A stretch of 64,000 nucleotides of DNA from Trichosphaerium sp. ATCC 40318. Lineage: Eukaryota > Protista > Tubulinea. Where the stretch lies: the NCBI GenBank assembly GCA_038496445.1, contig JALMLS010000143.1:434001-498000 (forward strand), in the 5' to 3' direction. The position numbers were made by a program, and so were the translations under genes. The notes below the pieces were generated by a model. That model was not told the origin of the DNA. It saw only the letters and a program-made list of their open reading frames with translations, and did no database searches. Position 1 is the first letter of the stretch. The number at the start of each line of letters is the position of its first letter. This document shows, one piece after another, positions 6,659 through 62,900 of the stretch.

Positions 6659-9600
6659 TTAGTCTCTTATTGATGTGTCTGCTGTTTTGTCATCTTCCTC
6701 ATCATTTTTATCCTCCTTTAACTTGCTTTTTAAGTATTTTACCTCTTCTTTCAAGTCCTTAACTTGTTGTTTTAAGTCACCGTTTGCATCATCTATTACC
6801 GATCCCTTGGTAACACTTGAAAGATCCATAGTTGCTGTTCTTCTCTTAGAATCACTTGTTTCGGTGTCTTGTAGCATGTAGTGCATGCGTGGTATTACCA
6901 AAGCTAGTACTGTAATGAAAGGTCCAAGCACAAGACTCCCAGATCGTAAAACGAACGTTAGCGTCCGATTCTCACCTCCAATAACCTGCAAAGCATTAGT
7001 TTAGATGGCAAAATTCTGCACTATAACGTACTTGTACGATGCCTAATATGGCAATGAAGAAAGCGAGTGTGTAGACTGAGAATCCAATAATTCTATTGAG
7101 AAAAAATTAGAACAAAGATATGTCAACACTGTTTTACGTACTTGGACTCATTGTATAGTACTGACTTTAGTTTCCATATTCTTACAGCCCAGTATAGACC
7201 GTATATAATGATACCAATATTGAATACAGCGATTATACTAAAGAATATCTTGTCATTGTCTCCGAAAGTACAAACAAAGTAATCATCTGATAAAACAAAC
7301 GGTTCGGCTGTCTCTAGTACAGCCCGAGAACGGCTTACTATTGTCCAAATAGATAGAAACACAACCTCGATAGCAACAATACCAGCGACAATAGGAATAA
7401 TCATCATGTTTGTGACTTTAAATACTTCCAAAGTATCAACAAGGAAAATCTGCCCAATACGATAGATCCGAGCAAACAATGCTCCATAAGTCAACTAATC
7501 CTCTATCAGCGACCAAAATCAAACTCAGAACAATAACGCACACTAAAACCTATGCCAAGGAACCATCGTATTGCATTGCAATGAAAGTCGTTCGTATGTA
7601 GAGTCCAGAAAAAAACAGTAGAATACATAATGATGGTGCCAAGCTGTTCCAATTATTAATCACATGAAGAGGCTAAGATACGTACCAAGGTGAGAACAAC
7701 AAACAAAGGTTGTGAAGCACGTATTATCCGATTATTTTGGAATATGATTACCCATATTACAAGGCCCATTGTTAGTATAATAATAAGTGAAACCAGAGCA
7801 AGCACAACTCGTTCGGCTGTTGTTTCTACAGAAACTACTTAGAAGCAGTGACTTAATGTTTACACGTACTATACCACCCGTATGTGGTTTCACGTTCATC
7901 CCATTTCGGAGCTGGATATATAAAAGGTGTTGTAACAGCAAACAAAGGTGCTACAACTTCAGCATTCAAGTCTTGATCCAATTGATAAGTAAGTGAAAAC
8001 CTTCCTAAATTCTGTCCGTTCAAATCAAATTGAAACTCTCCAGCAAAGCCTTTCATATTCATATTATTAATAGCATCTTGTATCTTATCCGTGTCGAAAG
8101 AACTTTGTAAAAATAAGAAATAAATCATGTGATCAAAGGCATTTATCTGATAAAATTATTTGCTTACTTTGCTTTTTCAACAGCGTACTGAACCATGTAG
8201 CCTGCAACATATCCTGTCATACCATGATGGCCAGGAGATACACCAAATCTTTCTCTGTACTTCTGAGCAAACAATTGAGGTGACGGCAATGTGCCGTTAC
8301 TACGGAAGTGATAGTGTCTGATGTTAGGATCGTCTTCATCGTAGATATTGCTATTTAGATTTTCATTCCACTACAAAAACCACTGTAAGTTCGCTTTTAA
8401 AGAACAAGACTCACCATGTTTCCTGCATCCATAACGTATCTGACATCTGGGCCTAAGTTCGGAAGATTTGAAGGAAGAAGACAAGGGACTGACAATAGGT
8501 ACGCCTAAAAATGTGAGACACAAGAATTGTTTTTAATCTTCTTACCTTTGCATTGAAATTCAGTTCTCTAGATATTCTCATAAGCGCTCCGCATGACGTA
8601 AAAGTACCACCAATGACCACATCTACAATACACAAAATAATCAGTAAAGAAGACAGTCAGACTTATCTGACCTGGTTTCAATTTAATTAGTTCCTCTACC
8701 ATTTCTCGTACATCCGCTTCTTGACCTTCGGGATCAAACCTGTCTCTGATTTCTTTTTGGTAAACTAAATCAAACCCTAAGAATGATATAGTTCTAAGAG
8801 CGCCAACACTTATGCCTACGACCGATGCTAGAAGTAGTCAGTACATTTACATGGTTTTAATTTTTTTTGGCTCGTACGCTCCCAAAACAAGGCAACAGAC
8901 TTCACATTCTGGATTGCCAACAGATTCAACGGCTCGGGCATGAATTTTTCAGTTGGTATAAGGATCTCAACGGTATAAGGCAAGCGACGACCAAAAGGTG
9001 CTTCACAAGGAGGTCTCAGCTCTTCATCGCAAATCTGGTTTGTAGGGTTTCCAGCGGCACCTGTGTTGACTTTTAACCTCCCGAAACAGTGAAGTATTAC
9101 TTACCCCATATAGAGTTAATTTTAAATTCATGTGCAACGAGCGCAGCTGGCAATCCAAGCTCCGTTGAGAGTGGCTTAACAGAATGTTAAGTTTACTCTA
9201 AAATACACCTCACGTACAAGAAAAATCAAGTTTACATTGTACTCTGTAATAAGTACTCTTGTTGCATTTGCTGTAGCTTCACCTGTGGGTTCTATAAAAA
9301 TAATTAACAAAACCAAAATAGATTATGACGCCAAGTAACGTGTCCCAGAGTGTAACGACGCCAAAGTCACGTGTCCTAGAGTGTAACGACGAAGCACAGA
9401 TTGTGAGGCTCATTTTTTTGGTGTTTTGTGTGTAGTTTCAACGTGCTCAAACGTACCAACCGGAGTGAATAAGATTTCAACCGTATGCAGAGACCCATTA
9501 ATCAGTAGCCCTCCTCTTTCGTTTACCTTTGTAAATAAATATATTTAAAGGATATATTTAGTTGTACCGTGTCTCGCCACATCTCGTGGCTGTTACGCTG

Positions 9601-9717
9601 TAATACCGAATTGCCAAGAAAGTTTCCTTCTCGGGGATACACACTACCTATTCTGAACACCTTGTCCATAGATAAGACTATCATAATGAGAGACAAAAAT
9701 ATCACAAGCCGCAGCAT
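6659..9717 (-). CDS. Class C (GABA-B-like / Dictyostelium Grl-like) GPCR with periplasmic-binding-protein ectodomain
   Basis: Signal peptide MLRLVIFLSLIMIVLS; ectodomain motifs VNERGG, GPLSTEL; 7TM motifs IIRASQPLF, CNAIRWFLGIGF, TYGALFARIYRI, LYNESK; coiled-coil tail. Confidence 0.85.
9327..9391. repeat. Two imperfect 30/31-bp tandem units within a GPCR intron
   Basis: gacgccaagtaacgtgtcccagagtgtaac then gacgccaaagtcacgtgtcctagagtgtaac then gacg. Confidence 0.85.
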
Positions 9718-10055
9718 TTGCTTTTTGTACCAAACGGGCTTTTTTTTATCCCAATTCAAAACACCTAAGAAATGTGTACGGTGCTACTCCGTCTCCGTAA
9801 TTAACACTCAAAACGTTCGTTTTTAACTGTTCGTTATTACTAACAATAAACATTTACAAGCAATACAAAAGAAGTCATGCAACCTGAAAAAAAAGATCAA
9901 GCACTCCGGCAACAACAAAAAGAAAAGTCACGTGATATTTGCTAAAGCCGTCAGTGACTTTTGATAAAGCTTTAAGAGTACAATTTATTTACAAACAGCT
10001 GACCAGCCCATTCCCAAGTAGTATTGGGTGATTAATTTACAGATAAAGAAACTTT

Positions 10056-10757
10056 TCAATCCTGTTCTTCATCGTCATCTTCAGTTACGACTTTAGGAGT
10101 CAAATCCTTTTCTATTTTACCATCCTTCTTTATACAATGCATAAAAAGTTTTCCATCGCTATCCCACTCCTTATACTCACCAACCTCAACGTTATGCTTA
10201 CAATAACAATGAACATGCAATTGTCCATTAAAATACCATTGCTTATACTCTCCTTCATCCATACCTTCTTTACAGAAAGAATGCGTGTTTAACTGTCCAT
10301 TTGTATGCCACTGCTTATACTCTCCATGATGCTTACCCTTGACGTAGTAGCAATGAATATGAAGCTGTCCAGACCCATACCATTGCTTAAACTCGCCGTC
10401 GTTCAACCCATTCTTCTTAATCAAGCGTTCATGTAGCGAACCGTCAGAATAGAATTGTCTCACTTCTCCTTCCTCTTTTCCTTCCTTATATGTACTCTCT
10501 GTTTCGACTTGTCCGTTCTTATACCATTGACGGTGGTCGCTCACTTGAACTCCGTGTTTGAACCAAGATGCAGCCGATTTTTGACTACAGTCGTGCCATT
10601 TTAGCCACTGGCCTTGCTTTTCCAGATTCTTGTCGTAGTGCGTTGCTAACGCAGCACGCTTTGATAAAACGTGCCACTTATAAAAAGAGTAAGGAGCGAG
10701 TTTGCACATTTCCTTCTGAAGCTCCGTAGGGAGGTCCAAGAGCGTCATGCGAGGCAT
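10056..10757 (-). CDS. Intronless F-box-like plus MORN-variant (YwqK-like) repeat protein
   Basis: N-terminal LLDLPTELQKEM; about 6 repeats of 24 aa GEYKQWYxNGQLxxHCxYKxG; single uninterrupted ORF. Confidence 0.85.
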   Translation of the reverse strand: MPRMTLLDLPTELQKEMCKLAPYSFYKWHVLSKRAALATHYDKNLEKQGQWLKWHDCSQKSAASWFKHGVQVSDHRQWYKNGQVETESTYKEGKEEGEVRQFYSDGSLHERLIKKNGLNDGEFKQWYGSGQLHIHCYYVKGKHHGEYKQWHTNGQLNTHSFCKEGMDEGEYKQWYFNGQLHVHCYCKHNVEVGEYKEWDSDGKLFMHCIKKDGKIEKDLTPKVVTEDDDEEQD

Positions 10758-11554
10758 TTCTAAGTAATATATAAGTAAACAACGCAATTTGGTGACAAAT
10801 GTGCAAAAAAGGGAGTCAGAGCGCGTGACTGTTTTTTTTTTGATGCGACTACGTCAGTTAAGTACATAGACGGCAGTAAACGCGTAAAATGGGTTGTGAA
10901 TTAGTTTTGTTTTTAGATAGTTTGTTTACACAACCACACACGCATGCGTCGTTCATTTTGTGAAGATAAAACCGTTTGCGTACTACTTTGGTGCTGTACT
11001 CGTTTCTTCATAGTTATTTTACTTTTAATAGCTTGGTAATAACTGTTAGTATGCGATACGTTGCGTTTAACGAGCAACTTGTAACAGTCTACAAGTTTCA
11101 ATCACTAATTAGGCGTCTTTGCCGTTTGAGGCACCACAAAAACGCCGAAAGCTAAAAATGTCACACAGGACAGTTCCTACTTTTTGTAAACCTATTGACA
11201 TGTACCTCTTTGATGTTTCTCATTGTTGCGAAGCAATACGGAGAAAAAATATTAAAAATAAACTGAACAGTCGCAAGGAATTAACTTGTGGTAGCGCGGA
11301 GTCCTGTGGTTTACGTCATTGAGGTAAAAAACATGACCTCAAAAAGGTAAAAACTATACACCAGTCTCAGGAAACATAAATCTTTTGGTGTATTTTAAGC
11401 TTGTGATTGTGAAAAAAAACCCGCGACTAAGGCGGGATAATAAGTCCGAAAACTGCTATCAGAAAAACGTTTGGCATACACTTAAGAAGAGTGTCTCAAG
11501 CCCCACAATTTCAAAATAGGCGTTATAGCAAGAGTACAACGCCAATAATACACC

Positions 11555-13428
11555 ATGAAAGGTCACTAAAATTCAAGCATCTAAAAAGGAGCGTTATTTA
11601 CGTAAAACAGTTCCACCAGCGCATGGCATGCCCTAAAAAGTACAACAAACAGCATTCTGATGATAGATGAAGAAACTGAAATTGACTACGTCATAACGTT
11701 ATGTCCTCGGCTTGGGGATGATAGTAAGCTCTAGTTAGCATAAAAACGCCATAAGATTAACTATTTAACAGGTGGTACTGATTTTACTCTAACTCCCGGC
11801 GAGACGTATTTTATTGGTAGAGGCGTAGATTGTATAGACTTTGGAGTTTATCTAAACGATAATAACCACCTAAGCAGAAAACAACTATCAGTGACTCATA
11901 TAGAGAAGGAACCAACAGTTTTAATAACACAAGTACGTTGTACCAGTATTTAACGATATTTTTTTAAAATTATATCTCAAAACTATTTCCATTGCATTTC
12001 ACCTATAAAAAATCGCTTCTGACGCGTGGAGAACACGTAATAAAATTATTAGCAGTTTTTTTTTTCAGAACAAGACTTTTTTGGCAAGTCCGAAATTCGC
12101 GACTAAGCCTCTTTGTTTTAAGCTTGGTATTAACCCTGGATGTATCATTGGTACTAACGGATCCAAACATTCCCCCATGGCACAACATGATAGCGTAAAA
12201 CTTGCAGATGGCTCTTTTTTTGCTCTATTATACCGTACGCCTTTTCAAGGCTGTAACTATCTAAGGGTTTTACTTAGTTGATGGCAAACCTCTGTTTAAG
12301 TTTGAAGTGAAGATTAAACCAGCAGAGAGAACATCTCTTCCTAGGTCGAAAGTGCAACTCAAAAAACATACAACTTCGTCCCCTTCTATACAGGAACATC
12401 AACCTTCTATAGATTTTATCATGCGTCCTCCACTGTCAAAATCAATGTCAAAGTCAATGTCAAAATCAGGTTCTCTTTCAAGGTCTGTTTCAAGTCATGT
12501 TAAATCAGATGGAAGTGTTAGTTCGCATCCAATGGCAGCTGAGTTTAAAGCTATTTTTAATAGTTCAAAAGAGTCCGTAGCAAGCATTGAAGCCAACTAT
12601 AGTATGGGCAATCAAGCGGAGTCTTTGCCACCAAGCGTTGATTTTGGTGATGGTGCTACTAGTAGCTCAAGCCTAAAAAGAAAAACCGAAGATTCAAAGC
12701 CTTCTCAGTACACTCCACAGAAGAAGAAAGTTCGTAGAGAGTTATTTAGTGATACACCTCCAATGTCACCAGACGGCTCAGATAATAAACATAATATGAA
12801 TAAAAAGGTAAGTCACGTTTTGCTTTTTTTAAAGTATGCTGAGACTGGCTTATTGATTTTCTGTTCTAAGGTCAAAGAAATTCAGGAAATATTTCCTTCA
12901 ACCCCACCAAAGGAAGCAAAAGCTGAGTTACTAAAACACAATAAAGACGTATCAAAAACTCTTACAGCAATGCTCGCACAAGAGAAGATGAAAATAGACT
13001 ATGAAAATAGAAAACGTGAATCTATGGGTGGAGATCAGAGTGAACCTATTGAAACTGTTCCTCTACCAAAAAATAGTCTACCTAAGAGTAGTTCGTCACT
13101 TAACCTTTCTGGGAGTACCCCTTCATTATTCGAAAATGAAAACGAACGAAAGACTGGGTACGTCACCTTCTGTTTAAATCGTACTTTTTTCTTGGTTTTC
13201 TTGATTGTACCGAGTATTAATCTTTTATCTTCTAGAGTTGAGTCTTCAGTTGATGTAGTAGCGCTTCAAGCATTACTAAAGGAGAAGACTGAGCGAATAT
13301 CAGAGCAGTCTCAGTTATTAAAAGCTAAAGATGATAGTATAAACAAACTTCAATCCAAAGTACATAAACTTGAAGCAAAAGTTCTTAAGCTCGAAGCAAG
13401 GTTAAGAGACAACACAGATCTTGAATAA
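11555..13428 (+). CDS. FHA (PNKP/APLF/aprataxin-type) - Ser-rich linker - CUE-like - coiled-coil protein
   Basis: Spliced N-terminus contains YFIGRG...HLSRKQLSV...QLGINPG; KEIQEIFPSTPPKEAKAELLKHNKDVSKTLTAML is CUE/UBA-like; C-terminal heptads. Start codon is tentative. Confidence 0.65.
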
Positions 13429-53820: not shown

Positions 53821-54291
53821 TCAATATTTCAAATGATCCTGTATTGCCTGGCGCTCTACAGATTCTTTAGTACCATCGTGAGTGACTTCTCGCTCGTTAT
53901 TAAGATAATCGTCTATTTCTGTATAAAAGCCCTCCCAGCCCAGACCCTCAGGAAATTCCTTTCGATAGAACGTTTTTTGAGCTTTAGACAATGTCTGCCA
54001 ACCGTCGTACCACGCCAATTTGTACCCTTCGCCGCCACCCATCCGCCATCCAAGGCAATAGCGCTCATAGTTAGGGAATTCCAGCCACAAAGGAAGCATT
54101 TTTAACGGCGTACTCCACTTATTAGCCTTTCTTTTCTTCAATTTGCTTACAAACTCCGCTGGCGTAATATTTTGAACGTGTTTTACGCAGTAGAAGTTTG
54201 CTTGCTCCCTTTGAACTGCACAGCACTTACCACACAGGTCACGAGTGCAATCCGCACTTCCTTGCTCGTTACAAGCCTCACACTTCAACAT
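53821..54291 (-). CDS. Cys/His zinc finger fused to a bacterial-type PxWxxxP...GWRMGxGE domain
   Basis: CEAC...C...CGKCC...C-KH finger, then LPLWLEFPNYERYCLGWRMGGGEGY...W...FPEGLGWEGFY; coding part has no intron. Confidence 0.7.
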   Translation of the reverse strand: MLKCEACNEQGSADCTRDLCGKCCAVQREQANFYCVKHVQNITPAEFVSKLKKRKANKWSTPLKMLPLWLEFPNYERYCLGWRMGGGEGYKLAWYDGWQTLSKAQKTFYRKEFPEGLGWEGFYTEIDDYLNNEREVTHDGTKESVERQAIQDHLKY

Positions 54292-54472
54292 AACTGAAAA
54301 AAAAATACGACCAAGATATGAAAAAAACGCCCAAAAATAGCCATCACACATAACCGTTAAATTTTTCTCGCAATTTCTACACATACGTACAGCTTTGTTA
54401 AAGGTGGTTTCATATTTATTAGAATACAAGTGAAGATACAAGAGATGGCGGAACAAACGCGTAAGTTTTTTT

Positions 54473-55818
54473 TTAAAAGTCAGCGTTCATTACGAACATG
54501 TGGTTAGAACCACTATCAGTGGCCTTATCACCAAGCGCTACGCCGGTCTTTTGATACTCCGAAACACGCTTCTCGAAGAAGTTTGTCTTACCCTAAGAAG
54601 TACAAGTTAGTAAACAGCCACTCGAGGTAAACAAAAAAAAAAGTGTCGGTTGCAAAAAGTAACTAAAAAGTTACGCGGTGAAAACAGATAACACGTGAAA
54701 AAATTACGCCTTACGCAATCCGTAAGGTTACGATAAGACAAAAGAGAAAAAGAAACAACTTTGTGAACCAAGAAATAACGTACAGGAAGTGAGATGAGTT
54801 CCATCCAGTCGAAAGGATTTTTGGCATTGTACAATTTAGGATATCCAAGAGCAACGATGAGACGATCAGCGACGAATTCGATGTAAGTTCTCATCATATC
54901 AGAGTTCATACCTGTTTGAAAAAAAAAAAGTTAGAGTCTAAAGAAAATAAAGGGTTTCAAGAAAAAGAAACAGTAGAAACGGATTAAATAACGTACCGAT
55001 TAGTTTTACAGGCAAAGAATCGCAAATAAACTCTTGTTCACACTCAACAGCGTTTCCAATGATCTTAGAGCGTATGTTAGTGTTAAAATTCCTGTAAAAA
55101 AACTTTGTGCCAAAAGTACCTCGTAAATTTTCTCAGCTGGTAATTTGTTGATGAGTTGAGAGTATAACAAGCAGGCGAAATCACAGTGTAATCCTTCGTC
55201 GCGGGAAATGAGTTCGTTCGAAAATGTTAAACCAGGCATTAGATTTCGCTTCTTGAGCCAAAATACGGCACAGAAGGAGCCAGAGAAGAATATACCCTCA
55301 ACTGCAGCGAAAGCGACTAAACGTTCGGCAAAAGAGGTTTCTTCGCTATTAATCCAGTTGGTAGCCCAATCAGCCTTCTTTTTGATGCATGGGATGTGAT
55401 CAATAGCATTAAAGAGCTCGTTGCGTTCTTTGGCGTCACGAATGTAGGTATCGATTAAGAGGGAGTAGGTTTCGCTGTGGATGTTCTCAATGGCAATTTG
55501 AAAGCCATAGAAGCATCTAGCTTCTGGTGATTGTACTTCCTTCATGAAACGGACAGCGAGGTTCTCGAGGACAATACCGTCGGATGCAGCGAAGAAAGCG
55601 AGGACGTATTTGATGAAATGTCTCTCGTTATCGTTGAGTTTTTGGCTCCAGTCTTTGATGTCGGTATGGAGATCAATCTCTTCAGCAGTCCAGAAGGAGG
55701 CTTCTGCTTTCTTGTACAACCGCCATACGGCATCGTTTTTGATAGGGAACAAGACAAAGCGTCCTGGGTTCTCTTTGAGTAGAGGTTCGTTCTTCTCAGC
55801 AAGTTTAATAGCGTTCAT
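54473..55818 (-). CDS. RRM2: Ribonucleotide reductase class Ia small subunit (R2)
   Basis: [72 protein letters not shown], ends NADF; three introns. Confidence 0.97.
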
Positions 55819-55968
55819 TTTTTGGAGTTGTGTTACTAGCCGTTGTAATTAGCGGTATTTTGAATTTACGAATTTGCCGGTCAAATGCCAATTCCACGCT
55901 TTTTTCTTTGTGGCGCCAAAATATCACTTATCGTTATAACCAATCCTACTTGACCACACTTCTCGAAC
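55819..55968. promoter_or_regulatory. 150-bp bidirectional promoter between RNR subunit genes with E2F, CHR and two CCAAT motifs
   Basis: TTTGAA 55859-55864; CCAAT 55888-55892 and 55940-55944; TTTGGCGC on minus strand 55913-55920 around palindrome TGGCGCCA. Confidence 0.7.
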
Positions 55969-58900
55969 ATGTCAATGTTCGTAGTAAAGCGGGATGGCGA
56001 AAGACAGAAAGTACGTGGTTGTTTTTCCTACTCCCAAACTTTTGGATATAAAACTTTCCTCCGCAAGTTTCTACGCTCGTATTAATCTATTTAACGCTAG
56101 GTTGCTTTCGACAAAATTACAAAGCGTTTAGAAAACCTTTGCCTCAACATAGAGCCTGTTTTGAAGCCTGATGATGTAGATCCTACCATTGTCGCTCAAA
56201 AAGTAACTGCTGGTGTATACTCCGGTGTTACAACCAGAGAATTAGACAATCTCGCTGCTGAGACAGCCGCTTACATGGCTACAACTCATCCTGGTACGCG
56301 CCAAAAATTACACGTTGGCATTCGCAGAAGTAATAACTTTAAACCCAGGATACGGTGCTCTCGCTGCTAGAATTGCTATTTCAAACCTCCACAAAGAGAC
56401 TGAAGGCAATTTCGCCAACACAGTTGAAAAAATGTATACCTACATCAACCCTAAGACCCAAGAGAAGTCGCCACTCATCGCTGATGATGTTTACAAAATA
56501 GTAATGGATAACAAAGACAAACTTGAAGCTGCTATTGATTACAACCGCGATTACCAAGTACGTTTGAGCTTGTAACATCTACAGTTACACTTTGAACCCT
56601 TTTTTTACATTATCTAACGGCTTTTTTTGTAGTACGACTTTTTCGGTATTAAGACCTTGGAGCGCTCGTACTTGATCAGACTCAGCGGTGTTATCGTAGA
56701 ACGCCCACAACACATGCTTGTACGTTAAAATAACACTTTTTGTAGAATTAAAATTTTTTGTTTTGTCTTTTTTTCAGCTGTAACTAATGACTATTGCAGA
56801 TGCGTGTTGCTGTTGGTATCCATAAAGAATCTATTGAAGATGTATTGGAAACATACGACAAAATGTCTCGTATGTTGTACACGCACGCTACACCAACTCT
56901 ATTCAACTCTGGTACGCTCAATCTCTTATTATCTTCACAAGCAACCTTCAACAGCTTATTTCCCGCTTTTTTTTTCTCGCACCATTTGTCCGCTACTCAC
57001 TCTACAAAATAGGCACACCATGCCCTCAAATGTCTTCTTGCTTCCTTTTGGACATGACAGACGATTCTATTGAAGGAATTTACGAAACTCTAAAACGATG
57101 CGCACTCATCTCTAAAAGTGCTGGTGGTATCGGCCTTGCCATGCACAAGATTCGTGCAAGCAACAGTTACATCAAGGGTACAAACGGTACATCTAACGGA
57201 ATTGTACCTATGTTACGTGTATTCAACGACACTGCACGTTACGTCGATCAAGGTACGATGCCAAACGAGCGTTAACGCCTATCCGTTATTTTTTCTTTTA
57301 AAGTTGTATCTCTTTGTTTGTTATTGTTCTCGCTCTTACTCTGTGCTTAGGTGGTGGTAAAAGAAAGGGCGCCTTTGCCGTATATTTGGAACCATGGCAC
57401 GCAGATGTCTTTGATTTCTTGGACTTGAAAAAGAACCACGGTAAAGAAGAACAACGCGCTCGTGATTTGTTCTACGCTCTATGGATATCCGATTTGTTCA
57501 TGAAGCGTTGTGAGAGTAACGGCGACTGGTCATTGTTCTGCCCTAATGAAGCACCTGGCCTCCATGAAGTATGGGGTGAGGAGTTTGAGAAGCTCTACAC
57601 TCGATACGAGAAAGAAGGTACGAATAGATTTTTTTTTTGTTTTTGCTTTTCTTTGGATGTTTTTTCGTTCTTTGTTGTTGACTCTTCATCCAGGACGTGC
57701 CAGAAAGGTTATTAAGGCTCAAAAGCTTTGGTTTGCTATTATGGAATCTCAAATTGAGACTGGTACACCTTACATGATGTACAAGGACGCATGTAACTCA
57801 AAGTCAAACCAACAAAATCTTGGTACTATCAAGTCTTCCAACTTGTGTACAGAGATTGTTGAGTATACTTCTCCTGATGAGGTACGTTGTGATTAACTAT
57901 TGCCTTTGGTCCTGTACTCATGTTTGTATCTTTAGGTTGCTGTATGTAATCTTGCTTCTTTGGCTTTGCCTAAATATGTCGCTGAAGACGGAACTTATGA
58001 TTATCAAGCACTTTACGACATCACATACCATGTCACAAAGAATTTGAACAAAATCATCGATGGTAACTACTATCCTGTACCTGAGGCTCGTGTATCCAAC
58101 ATGAAACACAGACCTATCGCTATTGGTGTACAAGTACGTACTTGCGCTTCTCTGCTCTATAAAATGTTCCTCTTTTTTTTGAAGCCATTATTGACTCGTG
58201 ATTTTAGGGTCTCGCTGATGTATTCTTGAAACTAAGACACCCTTGGGATTCTGATGAGGCAAGAAAGGTCAACAAGAGAATATTTGAGACCATATACTTT
58301 GCCGCTCTTACTAGCTCCAAAGGTACTTGTCTTAGCGTCTCTATCCAAACTTGTCTTTTTTTCTTATTTGAAACTTTTTTATTTGTTGTTTCTTTTCTAA
58401 TGCTTCTTCTCTAGACTTGGCAATCAAAAATGGTGCCTATGAAACGTTTAAAGGATCTCCTGCAGATAAAGGACTCCTACAGTACGATTTGTGGGGCGTT
58501 AAGCCTTCATTCGATAAATGGGACTGGGCTGGACTTAAAGCTGAGATTAAGAAACATGGCTTGCGTAATTCCCTATTGGTAGCTCCTATGCCAACCGCTT
58601 CATCATCTCAGATTCTCGGTAACAATGAATGCTTTGAGCCTTACCACTCGAACATCTTTGTTAGACGTGTTCTTGCAGGTGAATTCATGGTTATCAACAA
58701 ACATCTTGTTAACGACTTGTTGAAACTTGGTCTATGGACTGATGATATTCGTAATCAAGTACGACTTTTGTTTTTGAGTTTTTGTCATTTTCTTATTGTG
58801 TTGTGGTTGTATACTTATGCTTTTTGCTCTTAGCTTGTTGCTGATAAGGGATCTGTTCAAAATATCCCAGAAATTCCACAAGAATTACGTGACCTTTATA

Positions 58901-59302
58901 AGACTATTTGGGAAGTAAAACAAAGAATCATGATTGACCTTGCTGCTGATAGAGGTGCTTTTATTGATCAGTCTCAGAGTTTCAATTGTTTCATTGCAAA
59001 GCCTGATGTACAGAAACTCACGTCTATGCACTTTTATGGATGGAAAAAGGGATTGAAGACAGGTACGATATTGAGACCTTCTTGTTTTTTATTTTCTTTT
59101 TTCTTGTTTTTTTCCGCCGTTTTTTTGACTTTGTTGTTTAGGAATGTACTACTTGCGTACACAGCCTGCTGCTCATGCTATTCAGTTTACTGTAGATAAA
59201 CAAAAGCTTAAAGCACGTGCTGCCGCTGCTGCTGCTGAAGAACCTGAAGTTGTCGGACAAATTTGTAGAATGGAAGAAGGTTGTATTTCATGCGGCTCTT
59301 AA
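55969..59302 (+). CDS. RRM1: Ribonucleotide reductase class Ia large subunit (R1)
   Basis: ATP cone VVKRDG; [64 protein letters not shown]; C-terminal CISCGS. Confidence 0.97.
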
Positions 59303-59537
59303 ATGATTGGTTTTTTAAATTGTACTATAATTTGCGTATTGTGAATAAAGTGAGTTGTTGTTACTGTCCTTAAAGAACCTTGTATGTTTATCTCTTGGCC
59401 TGCAGTCCTTTTTTTATATTACTTCATCACTCGCGATAGTCACGTGATCTAAAATGGTACTTGTAAAGGATGAAATGGGAAGTCAATCTTGAAACAGCTT
59501 AATATTCATTTTTTTATTTTTGTTATTTGCATAAAAA

Positions 59538-60442: not shown

Positions 60443-62900
60443 ATGTCTGTGGTGCATTACCATACTGATGATGACCCATGTTATGGTCCTTCTTGTGGAG
60501 AAGTACGAAGTTGGTTTTTTAACGTAGAAATCCTTATAACGCGGTATTATCGTAGGTGCCCGTAATAGAATACTATCCTATGACAATCAGCACCGTAGCA
60601 TACCATAAAACTGCTACATGCGCTTGTAATGCTCCTGAACGACTACAAGAGCCTCTACCAGCGCCAAAGGACAATATATTCCAATATGCCAATTTGACAA
60701 CATTAAAAATACGCAACATAGGCATCAAGAGCGCCAATTTCGCCGAAATCAAGGTAAATACCACTATTTTGATGATTCTTAACGTGTTTGTAAGAAACTT
60801 CCTGGTTTGGCCCTCTTAGACATTTCAGGCAACGCAATAGACTCTATAGTACCACCTCCGAGTCTCCCTATATTCAACAGAGTAAATAGTTTCTCTAGGA
60901 AGGTGTTGAAGCGCTGACAACTTTGAAAAACCTCAACGTTTCACATAATTTGATAACATCGCTTCCTTCCAAAATATCATCTCTTACAGGGCTAAGAAAA
61001 CTCTACATCACCAGTAATAAGATTTCATACGTACCTTTGACTCTACTGAAGTTGACAGAACTCTCAGAGTTCGCTGTTGCTAATAATCCTTGGGTTTTCC
61101 CTCCGGACTACATCATGTCTTCAAGTACGATTAGACAGTATTTGGTCTTCTCAGTATTCTGATGTATGTGTAGCTTTCAAGTATATCAAACAGGCGCTAG
61201 AGGTTGTCAAAGGTATGTTGGGTATTTATGAATGGGTATATAATTGTTTTCTTGTTGTATAGTGCCAGTAGTCGTTGACAAGCCAATGTATTCAGAAAGA
61301 TTTAAGAAACTATTTAATTTACAAGTATTTTCTGACAAAACCTTTGATCTTGGAAGTACGACATTTCGCGTTCATTCTGTATGTCGTGCACCACAAAATT
61401 AGAAAAAGAACTTGCGGCTGACTATCTTAGGCATACTTGAAGTCAATTGAACCAGGACTTGAAACTAAAATGTCAAATCTTATTCAAAATGAAGAGATTG
61501 ATGTCGATCAGATGAGTGCTGTATTGACGTTCTTGTACGGAGGTAATAATTGAATACTATTTATCTTTTGGCAACTGGCATGTGCCAACTTATCAACAAT
61601 TACGCACATCTCACATGACTTACATTTATCGAAAAAAATAGAAATTGTGAAATCCAATGATGTGTCAATACTCGAAGACTTTTCAACACTGTTATCCAGT
61701 ACGTAATTATAGAGACAAAAACGAGATGAAAGTATTTCAGTTCGCCTCGTTACTTTACTTTTAATTTGGTCGTAGAGGTTATCCCTAAAAGCATGGCTGA
61801 TATTCCTCTTCAAAACAATGAAATCATGGCAAAGCGAAACAACATCAACCTGACGTAAGTGTACTCAGTATTTAGGTTCTTGATATTGTATAAGCTCCAT
61901 CTCATCATCTATTTAGTCTACAAACTACAGCTGGAGTGTTGCGAGATATAAAAGATGCATACGTGAAACATGAAGAAGCAACAAATTTTTGGCTTTCACC
62001 AGAACTTTTAATTCATAAAACGCTTCACGCCATGTACCTGGATGAATCAACAAAAGATGTGACTTTCACGTTTCCAAATATAACAGAAAAATATAAGGCA
62101 CATCTTATTGTGCTTTATATGTCATCAGAGATCTACAGCACAATGTTTTCTGGAAAGTACTCTGACAGTGAAAAAAGAGAATTTTTTGTACCAGACATTT
62201 CTTATGGTATCTTTGGACACATCTTGAAGTTCATGTAGTACGTTGCTTATGTATATCCTATCATACGTTAATATATCAATAGTGGTTTTGATATTGAATT
62301 TACAAGTGAGAATACAGTTGATTTACTTCAAGCTGCAAATCAGCTTCAACTGGTCAGGTGAGCGAAAAAGAGCAACTAATTTTCCCCGTTTAATTTTCTT
62401 CTCATTGCTCATTGCACACAAAGGTTACAACAAATGGCTGAAGAAGAAATATCTAAGTTTATAGACCATGATAATGCTGCAGGTAAGAATCTTTTAATTG
62501 GACTCCAGTGCTTTGATTAATTTTTTTCTTCTTTTTTTCTTAGGTCTTTTTGAGCTCTGTGATCGATTACATGTTCCTCAATTGAGAAAACAATGTTTAC
62601 TTTATCTCATAAGACATGCTGGCGATGCAAGCTTAGATATGGATAAGTTCATGCCAGAAGAGTTGAAAAAAGTTGTTGATTCTGGTTGTGTTGATGTCAC
62701 GCAATACGAATATAAGACTGACTTCTCAGAAAACAGGGAAAAAATAAGAGAGATAGCATCCACCAGCGGAACCTTTCTTCATCATAACATCAACAGAAGG
62801 TTCAACTTCTGAATTATCAGAAGTTCCTAAACCCAAAATTTTTATTCTTTTTCTTAGTAGAGCAGTAGTCAACTATTTAACAAGTCTACACCCCGAATAA
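60443..62900 (+). CDS. LRR plus tandem BTB/POZ domain protein (putative Cullin-3 adaptor)
   Basis: LRRs LKNLNVSHNLITSLPSKISSLTGLRKLYITSNKISYVP...NNPW; BTB1 FSDKTFDLGSTTFRVH...VLTFLYG; BTB2 KDVTFTF...YKAHLIVL...MFSG...ILKFMY. Ends are tentative. Confidence 0.8.

Follow-up and report, generated by a model that had tools for sequence, protein, structure and literature searches.

Head-to-head ribonucleotide reductase genes in the amoeba Trichosphaerium and a probable bidirectional promoter between them

The ribonucleotide reductase locus

The supply of DNA precursors is determined by ribonucleotide reductase (RNR), an enzyme whose two subunits cells take great pains to match. Here, we describe a locus of the marine amoeba Trichosphaerium sp. 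ATCC 40318 at which the genes for the small subunit (R2) and the large subunit (R1) of this enzyme lie head to head. The locus is part of a stretch of 64,000 nucleotides (assembly GCA_038496445.1, contig JALMLS010000143.1, positions 434,001 to 498,000 of the forward strand), which is called the window in this report and in which all positions are counted. R2 is read from the minus strand, with its ATG at 55818 (CAT at 55816–55818) and its stop codon ending at 54473, while R1 is read from the plus strand, with its ATG at 55969–55971 and its stop codon ending at 59302. The spacer between the two start codons is exactly 150 bp long. A first-pass annotation of the window had placed the two ATGs at 55818 and 55969 with 150 bp between them, and these coordinates proved to be exact.

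Gene models were built from GT..AG boundaries and the reading frame, and their coordinates are collected in Table 1. The three introns of R2 are 56, 85, and 191 nt long. The 12 introns of R1 range from 54 to 101 nt with a mean of 79 nt, and all but one of them start with GTACG, intron 10 starting with GTACT. Taken together, the RNR introns of the window measure 54–191 nt and start with GTAC (GTACG in 13 of the 15). The GC content in the window is 0.33–0.41. For the draft genome of Trichosphaerium, a GC content of 37.69%, a mean intron length of 75 nt, and 8.7 introns per gene have been reported (PMC10521059). The match of the locus to these figures in intron size (mean 79 nt) and GC content (0.37–0.41) was counted in favor of the two genes being the amoeba's own.

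Both genes are intact and encode the subunits of a class Ia RNR, and in this respect they are ordinary RNR genes. Database searches (Pfam and others) were run exon by exon, and the joined spliced proteins were used for local tblastn and blastp searches against fetched loci and for phylogenetic trees. R2 matched PF00268 in Pfam (E = 2.8e-94) and possesses all of the di-iron and tyrosyl motifs, namely AASDG, FYGFQ, ENIHSE, AVEGIFF, and RDEGLH. In R1, the ATP-cone, PF00317 (Ribonuc_red_lgN), and PF02867 (Ribonuc_red_lgC) were found by Pfam across the exons in the correct order, the ATP-cone match on a single exon falling under the curated cut-off (23.2 versus 25.8 bits). The active-site motifs SSCFL, NLCTE, and VCNL are present in R1, as are the radical-path tyrosine pair in YYLR and the C-terminal CxxC in CISCGS. 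Among relatives with solved structures, human RRM1 and yeast Rnr1 matched the R1 exons best. Exon 7 is about 80% and exon 11 about 60% identical to human RRM1, and identity to everything else is 62–69%. These distances do not settle the origin of R1.

Two divergent transcripts

Evidence from RNA came from four public runs, each from a different study and together filed under three organism labels, whose contigs have at least 99% identity to the locus. In these contigs, all 3 introns of R2 and all 12 introns of R1 are skipped exactly as modeled. Eleven of the R1 intron joints were listed directly and the twelfth (57253–57350) was deduced from consecutive pieces of one X1 contig. As introns are skipped, the runs are RNA and both genes are expressed. 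These results bore out the view of the first-pass annotation that both genes are intact and contain introns, as did the open reading frames, the Pfam domains, and the motifs described above.

The 5′ untranslated region (UTR) of R2 is at least 31 nt long and that of R1 is at least 23 nt long, the R1 joint 56010/56101 having 65 letters on the exon 1 side. A probable poly(A) site of R2 lies near 54394, where the start of an X3 contig is preceded by a T-run and adapter letters. The poly(A) site of R1 lies near 59374, where the contig end is followed by an A-run and adapter, after an AATAAA at about 59345. The part of the spacer that lacks RNA support, 55850–55945, is at most 96 bp long. Divergent starts less than 1 kb apart define a head-to-head pair, and at this locus the ATGs are 150 bp apart and the outermost RNA ends lie at 55849 and 55946.

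No contig that crosses the spacer was found in the four runs, which fits two divergent mRNAs. Nor was any polycistronic transcript with both genes found, the genes lying on opposite strands and being represented by separate spliced contigs in the four runs. The term "operon-like" used in the first-pass annotation was therefore an overstatement, as each gene has a monocistronic mRNA of its own. All four runs contain both mRNAs. The ratio of contig word depth between R1 and R2 is approximately 1 to 3.4 within a run, and the absolute depth ranges about 6-fold between runs; because contig word depth is a poor measure of expression, these figures were counted as co-presence only. The earlier proposal that the unit co-regulates subunit stoichiometry goes beyond this evidence, which consists of the presence of both mRNAs in the same runs.

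A candidate bidirectional promoter in the spacer

The spacer contains an E2F-type candidate site, TTTGGCGCC, which reads GGCGCCAAA on the plus strand. It matches the E2F consensus TTTSGCGC and lies in the presumed proximal promoter at 55912–55920. The longer form TTTSGCGCS has two matches in the 64-kb window versus 0.77 expected, one in the spacer and one at the start of R1 intron 2. The degenerate form TTTSSCGC is clustered, five of its seven matches in the window falling within the 4.8-kb RNR locus (between 55201 and 58305). A binomial estimate for this clustering is about 5e-5, a post hoc figure in which GC content, higher in coding sequence, is not controlled. Two CCAAT boxes flank the E2F-type site. 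The hexamer TTTGAA, which resembles a cell-cycle genes homology region (CHR), is weak evidence because it is common in AT-rich DNA. The lone TATA-like sequence in the core is a TATAA at 55935; it precedes the outermost R1 RNA end by only 7–11 nt, too short a distance for it to act as the TATA box of that start. In Dictyostelium, another amoebozoan, rnrA and rnrB are cell-cycle regulated and are both repressed by the Rb orthologue RblA (PMC3386910), which makes E2F-type control of RNR genes reasonable in this group.

Collectively, these observations suggest that a compact bidirectional promoter of the E2F/CCAAT type, active in S phase, probably serves both RNR genes of the amoeba, a function that we infer from the layout, the RNA ends, and the motifs. 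On this reading, native class Ia RNR genes have come to lie head to head in this lineage and are transcribed divergently into two separate, spliced, and polyadenylated mRNAs. The core of at most 96 bp, with its E2F site and two CCAAT boxes, would act as one bidirectional cell-cycle promoter of the E2F/Rb and NF-Y type, so that one regulatory event would switch on both subunit genes for DNA synthesis. Judged from sequence, the motifs may be bound, the spacer may act in both directions, and the linkage may have been kept by selection for co-regulation.

Table 1. Positions of the RNR genes, their transcripts, and the sequence motifs of the spacer (coordinates of the window)
Feature	Position	Strand	Basis or remark
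R2 (RNR small subunit), coding sequence	54473..55818	-	4 exons, 337 aa, lone terminal stop
R2 exons	55818-55120, 55063-54997, 54911-54784, 54592-54473	-	frame and splice sites
R2 mRNA, RNA-supported extent	54394..55849	-	X1 contig end 55849; X3 contig start 54394
R1 (RNR large subunit), coding sequence	55969..59302	+	13 exons, 794 aa, lone terminal stop
R1 exons 1-7	55969-56010, 56101-56293, 56349-56557, 56633-56719, 56800-56911, 57013-57252, 57351-57617	+	
R1 exons 8-13	57694-57881, 57936-58133, 58208-58322, 58415-58758, 58834-59062, 59142-59302	+	
R1 mRNA, RNA-supported extent	55946..59374	+	outermost 5′ end 55946; X3 contig end 59374
Intergenic spacer, proposed bidirectional promoter	55819..55968	.	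between the two ATGs
E2F-type candidate site TTTGGCGCC (GGCGCCAAA on plus strand)	55912..55920	-	motif match
Second TTTGGCGC	56298..56305	-	in R1 intron 2, at its 5′ end; may be an intragenic E2F site or a chance match
CCAAT box 1	55888..55892	+	motif match only
CCAAT box 2	55940..55944	+	motif match only; just upstream of outermost R1 RNA end 55946
TTTGAA, CHR-like hexamer	55859..55864	+	10 nt from outermost R2 RNA end

Relationships of the two genes

In the maximum-likelihood (ML) tree of R2, the sequence of the window belongs to a clade of 10 rows (support 90/85) together with Pyxidicula operculata (Tubulinea, EukProt) and transcript-sized contigs, and the dictyostelids are nearby. The main clade of 21 giant-virus R2 sequences (98/93) lies elsewhere in the tree. 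The closest relative of the R2 of the window is P0048/P0241, found on transcript-sized contigs (JGI and Logan), which is 322/333 aa long, 76–77% identical, and sister to it with support 93/78. None of the intron positions of R2 is shared with Dictyostelium purpureum, Chaetoceros, or Aureococcus, and the comparison of these sites thus gives no information on vertical descent.

Full-length relatives of R1 were reached by a profile of viral R1 and six cleanly aligned exons of the window as separate rows. When all 13 exons were aligned as rows to full-length viral R1, the short exons were scattered by MAFFT, and these six were kept. The search with the six-exon profile returned R1s of stramenopiles, giant viruses, and Bacteroidota and no amoebozoan R1. 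The R1 of the window forms a long branch, which is sister to a clade of stramenopiles and viruses in one tree (support of 93 in the Shimodaira–Hasegawa-like approximate likelihood ratio test, SH-aLRT) and takes no settled position in two others.

Genes of viral style are intronless and have viral neighbors; the pair in the window carries 12 + 3 introns of host style. The published genome of Trichosphaerium includes 1,581 gene models derived from giant viruses, and about 40% of these contain introns (PMC10521059). With so many intron-bearing models of viral derivation, a viral origin of a gene that contains introns is not to be dismissed out of hand. Overall, the evidence favors native amoebozoan genes.

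The annotation table of the same genome contains, among the rows listed, one for R2 (TRSP11064), with the figure 333, a Chitinophagales bacterium as best match, and listed neighbors that are not named R1 (PMC10521059). This row may reflect the R2 of the window, a paralogue, or an annotation gap. As a relative of R2 with 333 aa exists and the row carries the figure 333 with other neighbors, the genome may hold a second R2 paralogue.

Gene layout in other eukaryotes, viruses, and metagenomes

In a survey of synteny, a check proposed in the first-pass annotation, the linkage was absent from the six other eukaryotes compared, and a tight divergent pair occurred once in viral and metagenomic sequences. 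Within 5–10 kb of R2, no R1 was found in the dictyostelids D. purpureum and Polysphondylium violaceum or in Chaetoceros tenuissimus and Aureococcus, and no R2 neighbors R1 in Pythium insidiosum or in an ochromonad. Full-text searching of the literature returned no description of R1 and R2 as a divergent pair in the nuclear genome of a eukaryote. The arrangement in Trichosphaerium is unusual for eukaryotes and apparently unreported, and it represents a new instance of a well-known gene organization.

Several other features of the comparison loci were recorded. A transketolase gene follows R2 in both D. purpureum (L003) and P. violaceum (L169), which is conserved synteny, and a gene for NF-YA (CBFB_NFYA) lies 2 kb upstream of R2 in P. 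violaceum. In C. tenuissimus, a called gene of 893 aa at 8 kb from R2 (L170:19008-21260) combines EF-Tu/eEF1A domains with a match to Ribonuc_red_sm, as a result of either gene fusion or the merging of gene models.

Searches with R2 or R1 as the query yielded 316 viral and metagenomic loci. Of these, 151 have R2→R1 in tight tandem, the operon type of Bacteroidota or phages, and the loci from metagenome-assembled genomes of giant viruses (giant-virus MAGs or GVMAGs) mostly have only one of the two RNR genes. One locus is convergent (L220) and another is divergent with a gap of 3.2 kb (L239). Just one locus of the 316, L285, contains a tightly divergent R2/R1 pair. In Bacteroidota and many IMG/VR contigs (L004–L329), class Ia RNR of the eukaryote-like type nearly always occurs as a tight R2→R1 tandem, and by BLAST the proteins of Bacteroidota type are as near to the amoeba's as those of other eukaryotes are. 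Exon-sized R1 fragments on long contigs were considered as candidates for intron-rich relatives, and all five were rejected as noisy long-read Bacteroidota contigs with a frameshifted R2→R1 tandem.

The divergent pair on contig L285

L285 (IMGVR_UViG_3300042922_000939) is a 480-kb contig of IMG/VR with the RNR pair at 7549–11867. Its minus strand carries R2 and its plus strand R1, and the two ATGs are 157 bp apart. Four introns, each of exactly 38 nt, interrupt its R1, and a single intron of 37 nt with a TACTAAC branch site interrupts its R2; all are of the spliceosomal GT–AG type. The neighbors are long intronless open reading frames (ORFs), one of them with DUF5767, whose Atlas clusters are 96–100% Nucleocytoviricota. 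These neighbors indicate that L285 is a giant virus or a viral insert. The early-promoter octamer of mimivirus is not enriched in L285.

The R2 of L285 falls into a clade (SH-aLRT 93) with the R2s of the window, Pyxidicula, and the dictyostelids and with that of one other giant-virus MAG. Its R1 has no firm placement or goes with giant-virus MAGs, and it is not grouped with the R1 of the window. One of the introns of its R1 is at the same codon and phase as intron 6 of the R1 of the window. Because the shared intron lies at a protosplice site, AAG|GT, a parallel gain is plausible. The L285 pair may be a host gene module that was captured as genomic DNA.

Alternative explanations

Several points weigh against a shared promoter between two native genes. 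The RNA contigs cannot give the true transcription starts, and one E2F match together with common pentamers is thin evidence, the motif having been picked after looking. The R1 trees hold no amoebozoan R1, and forcing the R2 of the window into the GVMAG clade costs 23.4 log-likelihood units, which is not significant (p = 0.096 in the approximately unbiased, AU, test). The six comparison eukaryotes are two dictyostelids and four stramenopiles. As the linkage is absent from all six, RNR regulation in general does not require it, and it may have arisen by neutral accident in a compact genome. On this account, a rearrangement in a gene-dense genome made the two genes neighbors, each of them has its own core promoter, and the linkage plays no selected role; in Dictyostelium, the RNR genes are indeed co-regulated though unlinked. 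We nevertheless consider a neutral adjacency unlikely. With RNA ends at most 96 bp apart, there is little room for two independent promoters, and the sole E2F consensus lies between these ends. The gene count of Trichosphaerium is about 27,000 (PMC10521059), and by our own estimate, the chance that two named genes among so many are immediate neighbors is about 7 in 100,000.

A different history was considered in which the divergent unit moved whole between the amoebozoan and giant viruses, in either direction, or in which the pair is an old viral insertion invaded by introns. The first-pass annotation had suggested that the arrangement is either related to that of giant viruses or convergent, and the evidence is divided. 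The mimivirus genes L312 and R313, on opposite strands, invite the comparison. In agreement with the annotation, which had named them as RNR genes, they encode the small and the large subunit, respectively (PMC1215527). L285, with its DUF5767 neighbor, has the same layout, an R2 of amoebozoan type, and the shared intron site, the AU test does not reject the joining of R2 to the GVMAG clade, and many virus-derived gene models of the genome bear introns. However, in the ML trees the R2 of the window groups with Tubulinea, away from both L285 and the main GVMAG clade, the R1s of the window and of L285 do not group, and the shared intron may reflect parallel gain at a protosplice site. Furthermore, the 316 loci vary widely in layout, being mostly unlinked or tandem, which implies that divergent pairs can arise independently, and the introns of the window genes are of host style. 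A viral history of the pair therefore appears improbable. The specific proposal that the R2/R1 unit is an old amoebozoan cassette, exchanged whole with its introns between amoebae and giant viruses, is likewise doubtful; if true, it would explain both the mimivirus L312/R313 pair and that of L285, and the locus would be the cellular counterpart of a viral module.

It is very improbable that the two genes were wrongly joined in the contig. The four runs, all of them RNA, offer no bridge across 55850–55945, and the listed neighbors of TRSP11064 are not named R1, which would fit a false join. Against this, the junction is free of repeats, neither composition nor intron style changes across it, the published assembly used long reads (PMC10521059), and the TRSP11064 row may describe a paralogue. 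A bidirectional promoter between two native genes remains the reading that we prefer.

Neighboring genes

The gene just downstream of R2 (53821–54297, minus strand) appears to be an intronless ORF and encodes about 158 aa, with Cys-rich sequence at the start (CEACNEQGSADCTRDLCGKCC) and a stretch reading GWRMGGGEGY. Neither a Pfam family nor an Atlas look-alike was found for it. More generally, the immediate neighbors of the RNR pair gave no match of any kind, viral families included, in Pfam and Atlas searches of the flanking ORFs, in which only leucine-rich repeat (LRR) and BTB exons were found, further to the right.

Another of the four TTTGGCGC sites of the window lies at 60661–60668, within the first ORF of an LRR gene on the plus strand (60556–61162). 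The next ORF (60923–61162) has a weak match to the LRR of LRWD1/ORCA, and a BTB exon then follows at 61936–62238. From its sequence, the site at 60661–60668 may mark another target of E2F type adjacent to the RNR locus.

Significance and comparison with known systems

The locus presents a eukaryote with both RNR genes apparently on one control region of 96–150 bp. As a minimal natural system, it could be used to ask whether two genes can be driven by a single E2F/CCAAT module and whether physical linkage improves the balance of the subunits. The layout also mirrors that in giant viruses of amoebae, and L285 hints that whole host modules may enter viruses as genomic DNA and makes the giant-virus relation worth testing. 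Both points, the one on the promoter and the one on module transfer, are modest but testable.

Compared to known systems, the locus combines familiar and distinct features. The names of the mimivirus genes L312 and R313, with their L and R, imply divergent transcription by convention, and in mimivirus as in the window, the RNR subunit genes adjoin on opposite strands. However, the mimivirus genes are viral and intronless and have viral promoters, whereas those in the window have 3 + 12 spliceosomal introns, a spacer of host type with E2F and CCAAT motifs, and an R2 that goes with amoebae. L285 is more similar in that R2 and R1 are head to head (157 versus 150 bp), GT–AG introns are found in both genes, one intron site is shared, and R2 is of amoebozoan type. 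It differs in its introns, which are only 4 + 1 in number, measure 37–38 nt, and start with GTAA, while those of the window measure 54–191 nt and start with GTAC. The proteins of L285 (902 and 420 aa) also carry long extensions, its neighbors are intronless genes of giant-virus type, and its R1 is not specifically related to that of the window.

The nrdB–nrdA tandem of Bacteroidota type and of phages also has closely linked subunit genes, and its proteins are 66–78% identical to those of the window. In that system, R2 and then R1 are co-directional, 4–200 bp apart, and on one transcript, while the genes in the window are divergent with two mRNAs. The E2F/Rb-controlled RNR genes of Dictyostelium (rnrA and rnrB), mammals, and plants encode the same enzyme as the locus, and equal control in S phase is expected for both. 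They are, however, unlinked, with separate loci and promoters, whereas the spacer of the window would serve both genes. Divergent histone pairs, H2A–H2B and H3–H4, and head-to-head pairs of human genes provide examples of bidirectional promoters that join partner genes. As in eukaryotic bidirectional promoters in general (PMC1487180, PMC7817982), the coupled genes of Trichosphaerium lie head to head less than 1 kb apart, and the short spacer between them has E2F and CCAAT-type motifs without a usable TATA box.

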